Shown one piece after another: positions 31,092 through 39,100 of a DNA stretch of 64,000 nucleotides. Position numbers and translations under genes: made by a program. The stretch comes from Hyphochytrium catenoides (taxonomy: Eukaryota; Protista; Hyphochytriomycota), in the NCBI GenBank assembly GCA_900088475.1, contig FLMG01003337.1, forward strand, positions 1 through 64,000, given 5' to 3'. Position 1 is the first letter of the stretch; each line of letters begins with the position of its first letter. The notes under the pieces are model-generated. The model worked only from the letters and a program-made list of their open reading frames with translations, did no database searches and was not told where the DNA came from.

Positions 31092-34000
31092 ATGAAGAAG
31101 GACCTGCTGTATGCCCTGGTGGGCATTACCGGAGACATCATTGTGGAAGATGGCCAGAGCTTTAGAGTTCATCCAGGCAGGTGAAGTGCCGTGCCCCACG
31201 GTGGGACACACCGGCTGACAATACTCGCGTAGGAATTCCCTTCATTTCGGATTCGGAAAAGGTCATCATCAACAGTATCGTGAAACTGGGCTTTCTCTAT
31301 AAAAAGCTCCTCGAATTTTGCCGTCAAACAAGTGGATGGACCAATACTGAAGGCAATGAGAAGTGCTGTACTTCACTGAGATCTATTATCTGATAAGCTT
31401 CTTTTTCTCCAGGAACCGCAGCCTCAAATTTACAGGGCGGCGTCTACCTTAGGGCGGTCGCGGCAGGTATTCAAGAAGCTCTTGACCAGTACCGTCAGGA
31501 GTTAATACAGCTGGAAAAGGTGAGAGTACTCTCTCTCTGGACAAGTTCTCTCGTTACTAAGCGTCTTACACGCAGGACCTGAACAAGGATGGTGAAAAAG
31601 TTCAATTAGCAAGATTTCTTCGGCTGCGAAATCCCTACGAAATAGTTCTCTCATCTATGGTTGCCACGGTGGATACCGTGCAACGCAAGGGCCTCAAGGG
31701 AGGTAGGCCGAGGCCTCCTATCGATGGCTACTTCTCTTTTTGCAAATATGATAGGCCTCTAACACAGCTCCATAGCTGCCATCATAGATCTTGTTTATGC
31801 TAGAAGCCGATGTGGAATTAGGGCTGTTCAAGATTGCTTCGAGCGGTTGCACTTCTTCTGTACAAGGTAGGCAGATGTAGAAATCTACACAGTACCAGGA
31901 AGCTTTTCAATTCTGCCATCTGTTCTGCCTTTTCTTACCTCCCCTCGCTCAGCTGGGTACAAGCAGACAGTACTATTAGGATGCTGGCGACGAAAGCCTT
32001 ACCTGGACATTGCTCACAAACAACTCTTGGGTGCTTTATAAATCCCTCACGCAGAGTATTTATAAGCCAAGTCATTTCTTGGACGCTGGACGGCCTACTG
32101 AACGACCCGTTCGACGAATTTTTTATTAAAGAGCGGGCGGATGGCAAATCTAGCACAAGAAAAGCTTTTAGAAGATCCAAGCTTGGTCTGCTTGCTAAGG
32201 GTTAGTGTTCCATTGTGTGTGCTTGCGCAATGTGCTCATTGTGTGTGCTTGCGCAATGTGCTCTCTGGACTCATTATTCCCTTTCCCTTGCTGACCTCAT
32301 CCCTTTTCCCTTCTTGACCTTGTAATTTGGGTGATTAAGACGTTTTAGATGAAGAAGAAGCCAGATTTGCAGAATACTTGTGGAATAGCGCATACTACGT
32401 CGCTCTCGATAAGATTCCGTCGTCTATTATACCAGCAGAAATTGCTGAGAAGATCTTATTTATTGGCAAGGCCATCCAGGTACAGGAAAAGGAATGGAGG
32501 TCAAGGGATTCGCCTAAAGTGTTACCATGGCGAGAAGCACCTAGTGTTTTAAGATTTTTGCCCATAAAGTTGCGGTTGAGAAGGCGGCAATTCTGTAAGC
32601 CCTCACCAGATGCATGCAGGTGCTAGCCCAACATGAAGATGATCATCTGTCTTCAAGAGAATCGAATGCTCATCTAACCGTAGAGGAAATAGATATATTT
32701 CGTAGCACTTTCCGGACGTTGATGGACCACAAGTATCACCTGCTTTCCTTCCAGTGCGCCGTAGACAACCTAAAAGGTACCTCTTCCGTAGACTGGGCTC
32801 TATCCCTTATCACCACTTCCCTTGGGTCCATTGAGGTCCTGGTCCTGAGGACTGTGAGGATTTGACGCAATCGCTTTCCTTCGTTGCGTACTCCATGGGC
32901 ATCTCGAGTCTTCAGTTCTAGAATGACTCACCTTATCTCTTCTTGGATCACGTCCCATGGAAGAAACGGTGGCGCGGAAGCTTCAAACGCTCATTGTGCG
33001 AGAGGCTGACTTTATAGGCAATCTCACAGACTTAAGGGAGTTCTATTTGCTTTCCAAGGTAATAAGAGTAATGGTAACGATATAAGGCACTGAACGTGCT
33101 TAGGTCGCCCTTTGGTTACTATAGGGTGACTTTTACCAGACCTTTATCGAAGAAAGCCTCTCATTGCTCCAGAATCCCCCTTCTGCAAAGTCGGAAAGCG
33201 ACCTCAACTACGTAAGTGAATGTATGCTGTCAAAGCAGAATGGTTTGAGATGCCGGATGGGATGGAAAAGTTAAGCCCCTTCAGTGTCAAATAAATACTT
33301 GCACGTACAGGGGCCATTCCAGACAGCCGCACGGAAATGTCTTGTCAATGACGACTCCTTTCTGAAAAGATTTCGGATGAAGGTAACTAATTCTATGGGT
33401 ACTTCTGCCGATCTGAGAACATCCATTTAGCAATCTCACCCAATACAAGTTTAACGGTGGCGTTTGCAGGTATCTGTTCCAGCATTTTGCTACAAGGACT
33501 TTGAAGAACGACAGGGGCTGCAATTCACGGGTCTGGCTAGCTACCAAGAGAGTGCCAAGGTACCTGATCTGTCTTTTTGTTACCGCACTTTTAATTCCGT
33601 CGGAATGACTATAGTGAGCTGGAGCTTAAACTTTTTTACAGGCCATGCAGCTTTCGGCTCCCCAGAACTTAGACGGGGAGGTCATTGGAGAGTGGCCAGG
33701 AGGAGGACTATGGTGTGCTGATAAGAAGCCCATAGCAAATGTACGGGAGGACTTCTACTCCTCTACACGATATTACTCCCTCACTGGCACCGTCTTCTTT
33801 GGGTCGTTTCCACTCTGATCGCCTGCGTAGTTCTCGGTCTCTATAGAATCCAATCTCAGACCCAGGTTGAGCTAATAGTCTTGTCAGTAGGATTTCAACC
33901 TTTCTCTGGACTTTGAGTTCCCACTTGACCACAGCAGTCCCGGCTTCGCTGTAGTTTTCCATACCCATCGCAATGCTACAGGAGCAGGAGGAAGCGGAGG

Positions 34001-35933
34001 ATTACTTGGCTACGAGGGGCTGGGTTCATGCTTGGTGGTTGAAGTGAGAGATCCAAAGAGCGAGGAAGAGTCCAAGGATAACTCTTCACTGATAATTGCA
34101 GTGCGGAGAGTGAAGCTAGACGTGTCACGATTATCCACCACCAAGCCAGACGAGACAAAGCGGTCAGCGTCATCAGACGTCATTATGGAGCATGTGGAGG
34201 CAGTCTCCGCAGCGAGGGGTCTTAGGCACTGTCTCAGTCTTGCCTACAACTCCTACGAAGAAAAGTTGAATATTTATTTAGACAAAGATGCGAAACAGCG
34301 GTAAGTAGGTTATATGTATGTTTGTAGGATGCCCTTATCACAAAGCTATAAAATGATGGAGCACTAATCATATACTGTACCTACTGCTCAGGTGCCAATG
34401 TACTGCTGCGGTGGACCTTGGTAAAGAGCTAGACATTCGGTCACATTATCTGGAAGGATGGATTGGCTTAACCACCAGGGCGCTGACCCGTAAGTGACAT
34501 TATTGTGGTAGCGATAAGTGGCGATTCAGTCGCCATCAGTTATCCTTACACGCCAAGCCCTTTTTCGGACCTGGCTTAATGATTATGGATCGTTCCTTCT
34601 CCTCCTATCATGTAACACTTGCAGCGCAAGGGCCAGGTCCAATCATCTACTCATGGTCCTTCTCGGCGAAGAATCCGCCAGAGCTAAACTCTATGCTGAG
34701 TAGCTGGCGTTGTCTCGGCCTAAATTACTCGGTCTCCTGGCCTCTGCACCTCATGATCACGCAGGTGGGCCGCTGTTCAAGTTCATGACCTCTCACCTCG
34801 GGTACAACTACCTTTGAGACATGACCTACCTCGGGGCCTTTCTATCTATACTAGTACTGTACCCCAAAATCCCCATTATGCTCCATTCCTTCTCTAAGTG
34901 CGTGTTCTCTTCTGTATTCTTTGACATTAGGACTCCCTGCGGCAGTACAATCGCCTATTCTCCTTTCTCTTCACTGTTAAGCGAATCCAAGTTGAGCTCC
35001 AGGTAGTCTGGGCAGCTTTGATGGAGGTGAGCTTATTGGCTGCGGTCATCTATTGAAATCCTACGCTCCCCTCCTCCATGCCAAAATACGTGCATAGTCC
35101 TTTCTTTAACAGCTCGCCTTGCCTCAGCACAAACATGACGTCGCAGCAAAGGATAAATGGGGTGCTGTAGCTCCGATATGGCTCCTTCGGGCGAAGATGG
35201 CATTTTTTCTCGATAACTTGCAATACTATCTCCAGGTATACTTCCGTGGCTTATCAGCTGCATTGGAACTTACGTTCTCAACATCCTCCTGCTCTATACT
35301 TCTTCCACCTTGAACTAGGTCGATGTCATAGATTCCTCTTTCACCATACTGCTGAGGGACATCGAGACCTCGTCGGATTTTGAAAGTGTCAAAAGGGCGC
35401 ATGAGGACTATTTATCCTCTCTTGCGTATCGCGGTCAAATCACTTCCAGAACAGCCTACAATGCTATTATGGAGGTATGACGCTATCTGTGTCCTTGGTT
35501 TGCCCCTTCCTCGACTTCGCATACTGCACCTGGGAAATGGCGATATGCTCCTTTTTGCGGTGCTTGTCTAGTTGACAGCACCCTTTCTGTCCGCTAGCGG
35601 CATCGATGATGGTTTTGCTAGCTCTCCTCAGGGCGAGAGTGCGCTTTTGGTTCCCTGATGAAATAGGCTGTCTACATATTCTGAACAATTTTTCAGGTTC
35701 TGGGTTGCTGTCACTCCTTCTGTCGGACATTCTCTCCCTCCGCGCTGAAAGAGCTGGCTCAGTCCTCCTCGAACTGGAAAGAGAAGGCCCAGAAGGAAGA
35801 GGACAAGTTCGACAAACTGACTCTCTATCTCTTTACAGTCCTCCAACGGTCCAACGCCCGAGAGCTCATACTCCGGTTGGACTACAGTGGTAGCTTTAGC
35901 GAATCTGCGCTTAGATTAATGAGTTCAAGCTGA
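31092..35933 (+). CDS. TUBGCP4: Gamma-tubulin complex component 4 (Spc97/Spc98 family) with inserted lectin-like domain, multi-exon
   Basis: MKKDLLYALVGITGD..PFISDSE, VYLRAVAAG..LDQYRQELIQLEK, WTLDGLLNDPFDEFFI, AEKILFIGKAI, EFYLLSKGDFYQTFI, LGLNYSVSWPLHL, MAFFLDNLQYYLQVDVI, LILRLDY. Confidence 0.88.
32211..32262. repeat. 26-bp perfect tandem duplication in a GCP4 intron
   Basis: cattgtgtgtgcttgcgcaatgtgct occurs twice. Confidence 0.9.
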
Positions 35934-36197: not shown

Positions 36198-39100
36198 CTA
36201 TCTTCTAGCCAGGCGGTTCTTGAAAAGTGTGGAGCGCTGTTTTGCTGCTGTAGAGTATTCCANNNNNNNNNNNNNNNNNNNNNNNNNNNNNNNNNNNNNN
36301 NNNNNNNNNNNNCCCCTCTAAATAGAAGAAATTCTAGCTCTTGAAACTGAGGAGAGGACTGAGTTGCCGAGTGATAGATCCGTATGATGAGGGGGATCGA
36401 AGGAGAAGTACATAAACTGCTCACTAATCCAATAGCGGAAAAGGGAGAGAAAACCCGGGCCGTCACCAAATGAAGGAAAGGATGTCCTCTCTAGAGTAAA
36501 TATAATGGCAATGCTTACACAGAGTCTCCGGCTCCTGATAGCGCTCCCATGGTACCGCTCTTTCTCTTCGCTTTGTTTCCAGCTGCATTGAGTCCTATGA
36601 TGCTCTCTCGATCCTCCACCGCCATATTCTCTGCCTGATCCTCGCCTATTAGATCTGCTAGCTTTATATCCTCTAATAATTGCAGCTGGAGAAGACAGAC
36701 AGTCGTTAAGGCACAGAGCAGATAAGTTTGACCAAGAGGTGCATGCGGTTGACCACTACAAGTGACGAGAGAGCGAGAGCCCAGGCAACCGCACAGAGGG
36801 GTAAACAGGAGGGCAAGGATACCTGTGCCTCTCTTGAGTTGAAGTATCCCCCGTCAAATTCATCATCATCTAAGAAGTCTGTCTCCACTTTAAACGTATA
36901 ACCCTGGTCTACCAAATATTGCTGGCGCTTGTTAGAGTAGTACATCTCCTAAAAATAGCATTGGGTGAGCTTCAGAATCAGATCTCCAGACCAAATGCTC
37001 AACCTGTGTATCCGTAGACACCATGGTGTAGAAATATGCGTTAAAGCCCTCGCCAGCTGAGTGCTTAGGTCTTAAAATTCTGCCTAGTCGTTGGGCCTCC
37101 TGACGCCGAGAGCCAAAGTGTGAAGAAACCTGACACAGCCACATTTTCAGTTCCTATTTGTACAGGATCATCGATTCTGAAGGAGGCCCAGAGCAAGGTA
37201 ACACTGTCCAAAACAGTAGAGAAATACGAGGAGACCAGAGGCATTCGCAACCCGTCGGTAGAAGGTTATACAACGCACAGACTGACGGGACACAGAGCGG
37301 GATGCAGACGACTGCTTTTCTAGTCGCTAGCTTGACGAAGATAGACGAAACCGGCATAGGAGCAACCATATCACCTGCACAATAACGTTTGCCTCGGGAA
37401 GATCTATAGAAGTGTCCCCGACTTTAGATATACAAATCACATTCATTGTCGGATTAACACGGAACTGATGGAGAATCCGCATTCTTTCAACCTGTGGGGA
37501 CAAAATTAGCGGCAATTTGTCGGAAACTTGAAGAATAGTTATTACTGGCGACGATGCAAGTCACAATGGAAAGAAGTAAAAAATAGGAGTGCAGAGAGCC
37601 TAGTGAAAGAAGCCGAAGACCATAGCCCTGCGAGTGACGAAATCTGCCACATCCTACGAAGTTCGTAACAATCAAAAACAGATGGATATCATCCTTGGAG
37701 TCCATTTGTCGTCGCTTTTACCTCTCCAGTGCCTCCATAGATATAGGGCTTATGCAGAATTGTGGCGTATTTCTTCAAAGCAAAGACGTCGTCACTGAAG
37801 ATAAGTATCTTATCCCTGCCATAGAATTACAGACATTTAGTATCCTCTTCGGTGGTTTACGTATGATTCAGTTGAGGTTACCCTTTGCGCTCATGCTGTC
37901 TAATGAGCAGTTCCGTGGCCTTGAATTTATTCGGATTCATGACGTAGAGGAGGGACCGTTTGCGCGCGTTTTTCTGCACAAAAGAAAGAAGTTGAAGTAG
38001 AGAGGCAGCAGCGTGTTAATCATTAAGCAATCGTTGGGTGGTAAGTTGGCAGCCAGGGTCTTCCCAAGAAGCATTATGCTCTACATCAGCTCAATTTTGC
38101 TCAACCCATAATACATGCTCGCGTTCCCTCCTTCGGAACACTTGCTTTCCTCCAACAAGGGCGGTCTAAATTATCTTGATACCTCTCGTAAGTACTCCCT
38201 ATAGAACTCTGGCGTCATGGGGCACCAAACTTCCCGACAGGACACATTGGCCAGGTAGCCTTGCTGAGTCAGATCCATCCAGTTTGCCTGCACGAACTCA
38301 AGTTAGTTAGACTTTAGAGCTTCTCTTACCCTGTCTATCCTTGAAGATCTACTCTCAAGTACCAAGGGCTAGCAGAAAGGGAGACAAGAAGTCTCTACAA
38401 TTGACATGCTATACACAAATGACGCCACGCTTGGAGCCCATTTGCGTTCTCTTCTTGCTTAGAATGGAGTTTGAGGCTATGAATCTTATCTGTACTCGAA
38501 ACTCCACCAGACTGTCCTTTTCCCTTTTGGTAGCGCAAAGGTTTATGCCACAGCACAGATGGTGTTCGCTTACCTCGTAAAGCTTTGGGCCGATAAGGAA
38601 GTTTAAATCACCTATAAGATCATCTTCTCTCACCAGCGTAGCGGTAAGTCCAAGCTTACAATGCGCAGCCACAGAGCTAATAACCTGTGAGTGGTGATAG
38701 ATGGGACAGCACATAAGGACAGGAGCGTATTCAGGAAAAGTAATGGACTGAGACAAGGGTATGAACGATAAAGCCTTTACAACGAAGATATTCTAAAACA
38801 CTCAAATTGCACAATGTGCTTAGCCATGAAAGACGGAGGAAGAAACACTAACAGGACGAAGAGGGAGGCCAGGTAGCAGCTACTTGTGCTGAAACTTATG
38901 GGCTGACTAGTGGTAGGAGGGCTAGATTGACCCAAGCGTACCTTTCGAAACATTTTTGCTGGAACGACGTGTACCTCATCTAGTAGTAGCGTTCCCCATT
39001 CTCTTCCCTCAATTATTTTCATCACCTTCTCGCTCTCTGCACTCCGCTTCCCTCCGAAGGAAATCATGGTGTAAGTGGTCACGAGCACGCCGCAATCCGG

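Follow-up and report, generated by a model that had tools for sequence, protein, structure and literature searches.

The question raised by this locus, in the hyphochytrid Hyphochytrium catenoides, is whether a domain of lectin ancestry can be part of a component of the gamma-tubulin ring. The locus lies in a stretch of 64,000 nucleotides (nt) (assembly GCA_900088475.1, contig FLMG01003337.1, positions 1 to 64,000 of the forward strand), here called the window, and contains a gene for a gamma-tubulin complex protein (GCP) of the GCP4 type. With only its two GRIP domains and no accessory module known, GCP4 represents the structural archetype of the family. An initial sequence-only reading of the window had proposed that its GCP4 is interrupted by a legume (L-type) lectin-like domain, and the peptide strings on which this rested are all present on the forward strand, in the order given and with the right coordinates. 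We find that the GRIP2 domain of the encoded protein does contain an extra segment, and the evidence assembled below makes it very likely that a domain derived from L-type lectins is encoded within the GCP4 mRNA.

The host gene comprises 20 exons totalling 2640 nt (879 codons and a stop; Table 1) and was modelled exon by exon from the genomic sequence alone of this single genome, with every exon checked for phase and splice dinucleotides. The model has no internal stop, and its introns, which range in size from 56 to 222 nt, comprise 18 of the GT-AG type and one GC-AG. The latter appears to be the first intron (window 31177-31232; CAG/GCAGGT ... GTAG/). A canonical GT lies close to its donor, at 31181, but no acceptor pairs with it to leave a usable frame; the GC donor restores the sequence HPG-IPF, as found in other GCP4s.

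In order of their position in the genome, single exons matched first PF17681 (GCP_N_terminal; 34 to 243) and then PF04130 (GCP_C_terminal; 87 to 217), i.e. GRIP1 followed by GRIP2. When the sequences of the PDB were searched exon by exon, GCP4 chains were the sole matches for three of four exons, which map to human GCP4 residues 334-364, 445-468 and 472-500, whilst the fourth exon covers a motif common to all GCPs, for which Spc-type chains outscored GCP4. Since exon 1 aligns with full-length GCP4s from residue 1 onward (residues 1-20), there is no N-terminal extension before GRIP1. A profile search using four environmental GCP4s and the window exons as separate rows retrieved 472 proteins, the best 120 of which (animal or unnamed sequences) are 642-703 amino acids (aa) long and have only the two GCP Pfam domains, with every source-given name being GCP4. 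The product of the host gene is 879 aa in length, or ~642 aa once ~237 residues are taken out, compared with the 645-681 aa usual for GCP4. Four further GCP loci occur in the same genome and the host gene is therefore one paralogue of a full GCP set. These data support assignment of the host as a GCP4-type protein, as the sequence-only reading had claimed: in common with GCP4 (TUBGCP4; human crystal structure 3RIP, with its place in the gamma-tubulin ring seen in structures such as 6V6S) it has collinear GRIP1 and GRIP2 domains, no N-terminal extension and 40-60% identity in the conserved exons, but it differs from GCP4 in the length of one GRIP2 loop.

In that loop ~254 residues separate RFRMK, at the end of exon 11, from SSWRCLGLNY, within exon 16, where other GCP4s have 15-25 residues. 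The insert spans 33470-34689, i.e. four complete exons (12-15) plus 65 nt at the start of exon 16, and a PDB-based mapping places it at approximately residues 419-444 of human GCP4. The same interval occupies ~17 alignment columns in four intronless environmental GCP4s (L009, L015, L016 and L026; 645-681 aa) and is also short in a GC-rich environmental GCP4 (L008; 671 aa), so the view that this loop is short elsewhere holds for these five genes and for the human protein.

All borders of exons 12-16 are GT-AG, with phases 0, 0, 0, 2 and 1, and, as read from the sequence, retention of any intron within the insert would cause a stop or a frameshift. Exon 16 (34625-34764) is uninterrupted and encodes both the final lectin-like strand, IIYSWSF, and SSWRCLGLNY...WPLHL of GRIP2. 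The insert itself has no start codon, signal peptide or stop and is flanked by GRIP sequence on both sides. This constitutes a strong argument that the insert belongs to the GCP4 reading frame. The lectin-like exons could instead represent a separate lectin gene, or its remnant, residing in a long GCP4 intron and not translated with GCP4, an explanation to which exons 12 and 13 lend something, being phase 0-0 and hence skippable in frame, as does an AG at 34670-34671 that could in principle serve as a phase-0 acceptor for a short-loop isoform. However, the insert lacks a start with signal peptide and a stop, and its last strand shares an open exon with GRIP2; moreover, skipping exons 12-15 to the acceptor at 34625 breaks the frame because phase 0 meets phase 1, the five borders are all canonical and the total length of the 20 exons is a multiple of three, and we regard this explanation as very improbable. 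That AG is in exon 16 (window 34670-34672), with a phase-0 codon after it. Hypothetically, splicing of exon 11 to this site would keep the GCP4 frame, shorten the loop to ~9 residues and remove the lectin domain.

Searches and folding of the insert were carried out on single exons, the largest of which, exon 14 (136 aa), represents about half of the domain. Against Pfam, exon 14 matched PF18483 (E = 0.0065; profile positions 67-177 of 215; 16.8 bits). A phmmer search of 1.84 billion representative proteins, run as a filter-only HMMER pass, returned five matches. In two of the proteins (E = 6e-7 and 7e-6) the match falls within a PF00139/PF18483 domain that itself scores very strongly; a third protein is an autotransporter in which a Gly-rich unit is repeated, and the remaining two align to a charged loop and look low-complexity. 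Given that exon 14 alone matches L-type lectins at E = 6e-7 among 1.84 billion proteins, the likeness to lectins goes beyond chance. The nearest neighbours of exon 14 in language-model (Atlas) features are L-type lectin clusters (0.91), and phmmer against PDB sequences gave a single match under E = 10, to a legume lectin (E = 1.4) with which the two halves of the exon align in the right order.

Comparison with a profile built from six lectin domains using hhalign placed exon 14 on columns 59-119 (91% probability; E = 1e-6), residues 6-19 of the start of exon 16 on columns 211-224 of 230 (E = 6e-4) and residues 13-25 of exon 12 on columns 18-30 (E = 0.21; not significant alone, although in the expected position). 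A local hidden Markov model (HMM) gave corresponding placements for exon 12 (positions 11-27) and the start of exon 16 (positions 207-216 of 220). The pieces of the insert are thus collinear with a complete lectin domain, the end exons mapping to the ends of the profile and the core to its middle, and the numbers of residues flanking the exon 14 core are right for such a domain. By eye, exon 15 matches the V-x-V-G-F-S/T lectin strand, as seen in the lectins of alignment A6 (six full lectin domains) and in a lectin-like open reading frame of the same genome (C208).

Taken at the level of sequence statistics (PF18483, phmmer, hhalign and feature score), these matches bear out the proposed L-type lectin likeness and support homology of the insert core to L-type lectins (PF18483, PF00139 and the ERGIC-53/VIP36-type PF03388), the whole probably forming a divergent domain of ~240 residues. 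Its size is that of the family, and so is the order of motifs: an N-terminal strand, F-x-F, G-F-A, GG-x-LGY, V-E-x-D, L-x-V-Y-L, V-G-L/F and a terminal S-W-S-F. Unlike L-type lectins, however, the insert is embedded in a cytoskeletal protein, lacks a signal peptide, has the sugar-binding Asp and most Ca/Mn ligands replaced and contains an extra loop. Ser, Thr and basic residues abound in this loop of ~35 residues (window 34104-34205, in exon 14; around RLSTTKPDETKRSASSD). It is modelled with low confidence, the aligned lectins have nothing equivalent to it, and it might be a phosphorylation or regulatory loop.

An AlphaFold2 (AF2) model of exon 14, computed with an alignment of lectin domains, is all-beta with seven strands (predicted local distance difference test (pLDDT) 65; predicted template modelling score (pTM) 0.60). 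The ten best Foldseek matches of this model to the PDB are all legume-type lectins (E = 1e-3 to 3e-2), and in a Foldseek-independent search (VIA) the best 50 rows appear to be nearly all concanavalin A (ConA)-like sandwiches, with middling Z scores of up to 8.2. The modelled fold is therefore consistent with a ConA-like domain, short of an independent demonstration. ConA-like sandwiches also occur in other families, and an origin of the insert in one of these (laminin-G, pentraxin, galectin or SPRY type) would be a further explanation of the fold, but every sequence signal points to L-type lectin families only and no other family appears among the ten Foldseek matches, making such an origin extremely improbable. 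SPRY/B30.2 domains and the ConA-like domain of BEACH proteins are cytoplasmic sandwiches that bind protein and not sugar; the insert resembles them in fold superfamily and cytoplasmic setting, although they belong to different families with no sequence relationship to it detected here.

The residues that bind sugar and metal in lectins were compared in a seven-row alignment (A5) of exon 14 with six lectin domains. The Asp of the conserved DG motif, present in every lectin row (and, as D78 and G79, invariant together with its Gly in the six full domains of A6), is replaced by Pro in the insert (PGFAV). The Ca/Mn ligands of the family are the Glu and Asp of EFD, the next Asn and Asp and, in legume lectins, a His. 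Of the EFD motif the Glu is kept and the Asp aligns with Arg (EVR), the Asn and Asp ligands that follow both align with Ser, and the GG-x-LGY loop is kept. The two substitutions noted initially, DG to PG and EFD to EVR, are hence reproduced in this alignment. As a cytoplasmic or nuclear assembly, the gamma-tubulin ring complex does not encounter N-glycans, and for this reason also we infer that carbohydrate and metal binding would have been lost; on balance, the domain probably does not bind sugar.

It could alternatively be a working lectin for a cytoplasmic or nuclear glycan (such as modifications of the O-GlcNAc type) or another small ligand, coupling nucleation to glycosylated partners. 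The family does bind carbohydrate, the Glu of EFD and the GG-x-LGY loop are retained, and cytoplasmic lectins of other families exist. Yet with Pro in place of the DG Asp, Arg in place of the EFD Asp and Ser at both the Asn and the second Asp (Ca/sugar ligands), and with L-type lectins normally working in the secretory pathway, a working lectin seems distinctly unlikely.

We rather favour the reading in which an otherwise ordinary GCP4 carries a divergent lectin-fold domain in a GRIP2 loop, the domain being probably sugar-blind and serving the gamma-tubulin ring as a module that binds protein or has a structural role. The repurposed interaction module suggested in the initial reading would be a reasonable interpretation of this kind. 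An L-type lectin domain of ~240 residues would be seated in a surface loop of GRIP2, its beta-sandwich core motifs kept, and, having lost the sugar Asp and most Ca/Mn ligands, would no longer bind carbohydrate. Insertions into GCP loops with known functions are the reason for favouring a protein-binding or bracing role: the GRIP2 insertion of yeast Spc98 bridges to the neighbouring spoke and is required for normal spindles (PMC7658347), and part of the central insertion of human GCP6 is required for stable rings (bioRxiv 10.1101/2020.01.21.914036). These cases resemble the present one in that GCP loops accept insertions contributing to ring stability, but the Spc98 and GCP6 insertions are short or largely unstructured or helical, and contain no recognisable globular domain of an unrelated family. 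A site shared with the GCP6 central insertion was considered and rejected, since coordinate arithmetic suggests that the GCP6 insertion ends ~80 residues upstream of the present one.

A protein-binding or structural role specifically is proposed only tentatively. It is somewhat less probable still that the hyphochytrid GCP4, elsewhere a bare minimal spoke, carries a globular adaptor. Such an adaptor could fasten the ring to some lineage-specific part of the organising centre or, alternatively, contact the neighbouring spoke, in the manner of the Spc98 insertion, or gamma-tubulin, and so set ring geometry.

The distribution of the insert bears on whether it has a role at all. The insert core matched no GCP protein in the phmmer search of the 1.84-billion-protein library, was present in none of 20 environmental GCP4 loci and had no environmental relative in a metagenome scan, in which 212 pattern matches yielded 0 confirmed. 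No lectin Pfam domain occurs in the database GCP4s listed, including the best 120 of the 472, and none of the five environmental GCP4 genes compared at the loop (L008, L009, L015, L016 and L026) has the insert. Word searches with L008, and with a profile of L008 plus the window exons, were flooded with low-complexity, GC-rich relatives before any stramenopile GCP4 came up. In the literature we found no paper in which a lectin or ConA-like domain is linked to GCP4 or the gamma-tubulin complex.

The insert could instead be a decaying, functionally neutral passenger, acquired in a single event in this lineage and accommodated by a surface loop that permits it. In keeping with this, the loop varies in length and sequence among GCP4s, ligand residues have been lost, and the ~35-residue stretch of low model confidence could be read in the same way; against it, all 254 codons are open over five exons with intact splice sites, and the core motifs of the fold can still be made out in the middle of the insert as well as towards either end. 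We consider a passenger unlikely, albeit less so than the working lectin or the separate gene.

Several points weigh against a lectin-fold module on the ring. Exon 14 alone scores far below the Pfam gathering threshold of PF18483 (16.8 versus 78.3 bits), a shortfall attributable to the scoring of only one exon and about half a domain, whilst exons 13 and 15 gave no alignment to the lectin profile in hhalign and exon 13 had no significant Pfam match. The check on the fold stands in part: exon 14 alone does give legume-lectin matches, but these appear partly circular because the alignment rows feeding the model were lectins and one exon was folded, and a single-sequence AlphaFold control of exon 14 was uninformative (pLDDT 50). 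The content of the GCP4 mRNA, moreover, has been read from the genome and not from transcripts, a point that also speaks for the separate-gene explanation. Among the GCP4s examined no orthologue with the insert was found that could show purifying selection, a result that equally suits a neutral passenger; the oomycete GCP4s, from the nearest sequenced relatives, would likewise appear to lack the insert, as judged from the search of the 1.84-billion-protein library.

A folded domain of an unrelated family in this position would mean that the GRIP2 loop can hold a globular module of ~25 kDa, and would provide a handle on how the ring is anchored or shaped in a little-studied stramenopile lineage. 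It would also exemplify how an L-type lectin fold, its sugar site gone, can be taken into cytoplasmic use. If the domain binds a partner, it would point to a lineage-specific component of the organising centre, and, if it does act as an adaptor, to a novel means by which the nucleator is regulated or anchored. The weight of the finding is moderate, as it comes from one genome and is made at the level of sequence.

Table 1. Coordinates in the window of the GCP4-type gene and of the exons in and around its insert, with the basis of each assignment.
Feature	Position	Strand	Basis
GCP4-type gene	31092..35933	+	Phase/splice table; collinear Pfam matches; alignment to full-length GCP4s
Exon 11, last GRIP2 exon before the insert	33311..33382	+	Ends RFRMK, phase 0; aligns with the residues that precede the short loop of four intronless GCP4s
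Exon 12, insert piece 1, 30 aa	33470..33559	+	Presumed N-terminal lectin strands; hhalign and local HMM position
Exon 13, insert piece 2, 33 aa	33642..33740	+	In frame, GT-AG; domain membership by position only
Exon 14, insert core, 136 codons + 2 nt	33891..34300	+	PGFAV, GGSGGLLGY and VVEVRD motifs; strands near LSLAYN and LNIYLD; loop of ~35 residues
Exon 15, insert piece 4 (VDLGKEL ... GWIGLT)	34392..34489	+	In frame, GT-AG; by-eye lectin strand match
Exon 16, first part, last lectin strand IIYSWSFS and short linker	34625..34689	+	hhalign; local HMM
Exon 16, remainder, GRIP2 resumes (SSWRCLGLNY..WPLHL)	34690..34764	+	PF04130 87-110; GCP4 chains residues 445-468, E 0.0018

The genome of H. 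catenoides (4759 contigs, 61.0 Mb) contains no paralogue of the insert. It does have L-type lectin loci of its own, at C718:11864-12553 (L002), C2453:33498-34132 (L003/L004), C1525:3402-3605 (L006) and C208:5148-6248 (L005), none of which is close to the GCP4 insert. Its lectin genes include an ERGIC-53-like gene whose single open frame of 388 aa includes a coiled coil as well as a C-terminal membrane anchor, a second, intron-split gene of the ERGIC-53/VIP36 type (PF03388) and two PF18483-like loci in which the GDGFAF and EFD motifs are intact. A search for a donor gene within the same genome thus gave none: these lectin-like loci are no closer to the insert than bacterial lectins (38% over 39 residues).

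Amongst the environmental sequences, L008:6444-8459 is the very GC-rich, intronless GCP4 gene referred to above, and in its relatives (P0008-P0021; 643-1134 aa) other loops of GCP4 are expanded by long low-complexity stretches rich in Ala, Gly and Pro, from which it follows that GCP4 loops vary freely in length. In the window itself, a run of ~50 N at 36265-36313 marks a scaffold gap downstream of the GCP4 gene, ahead of a gene for an XPB-type helicase on the opposite strand.

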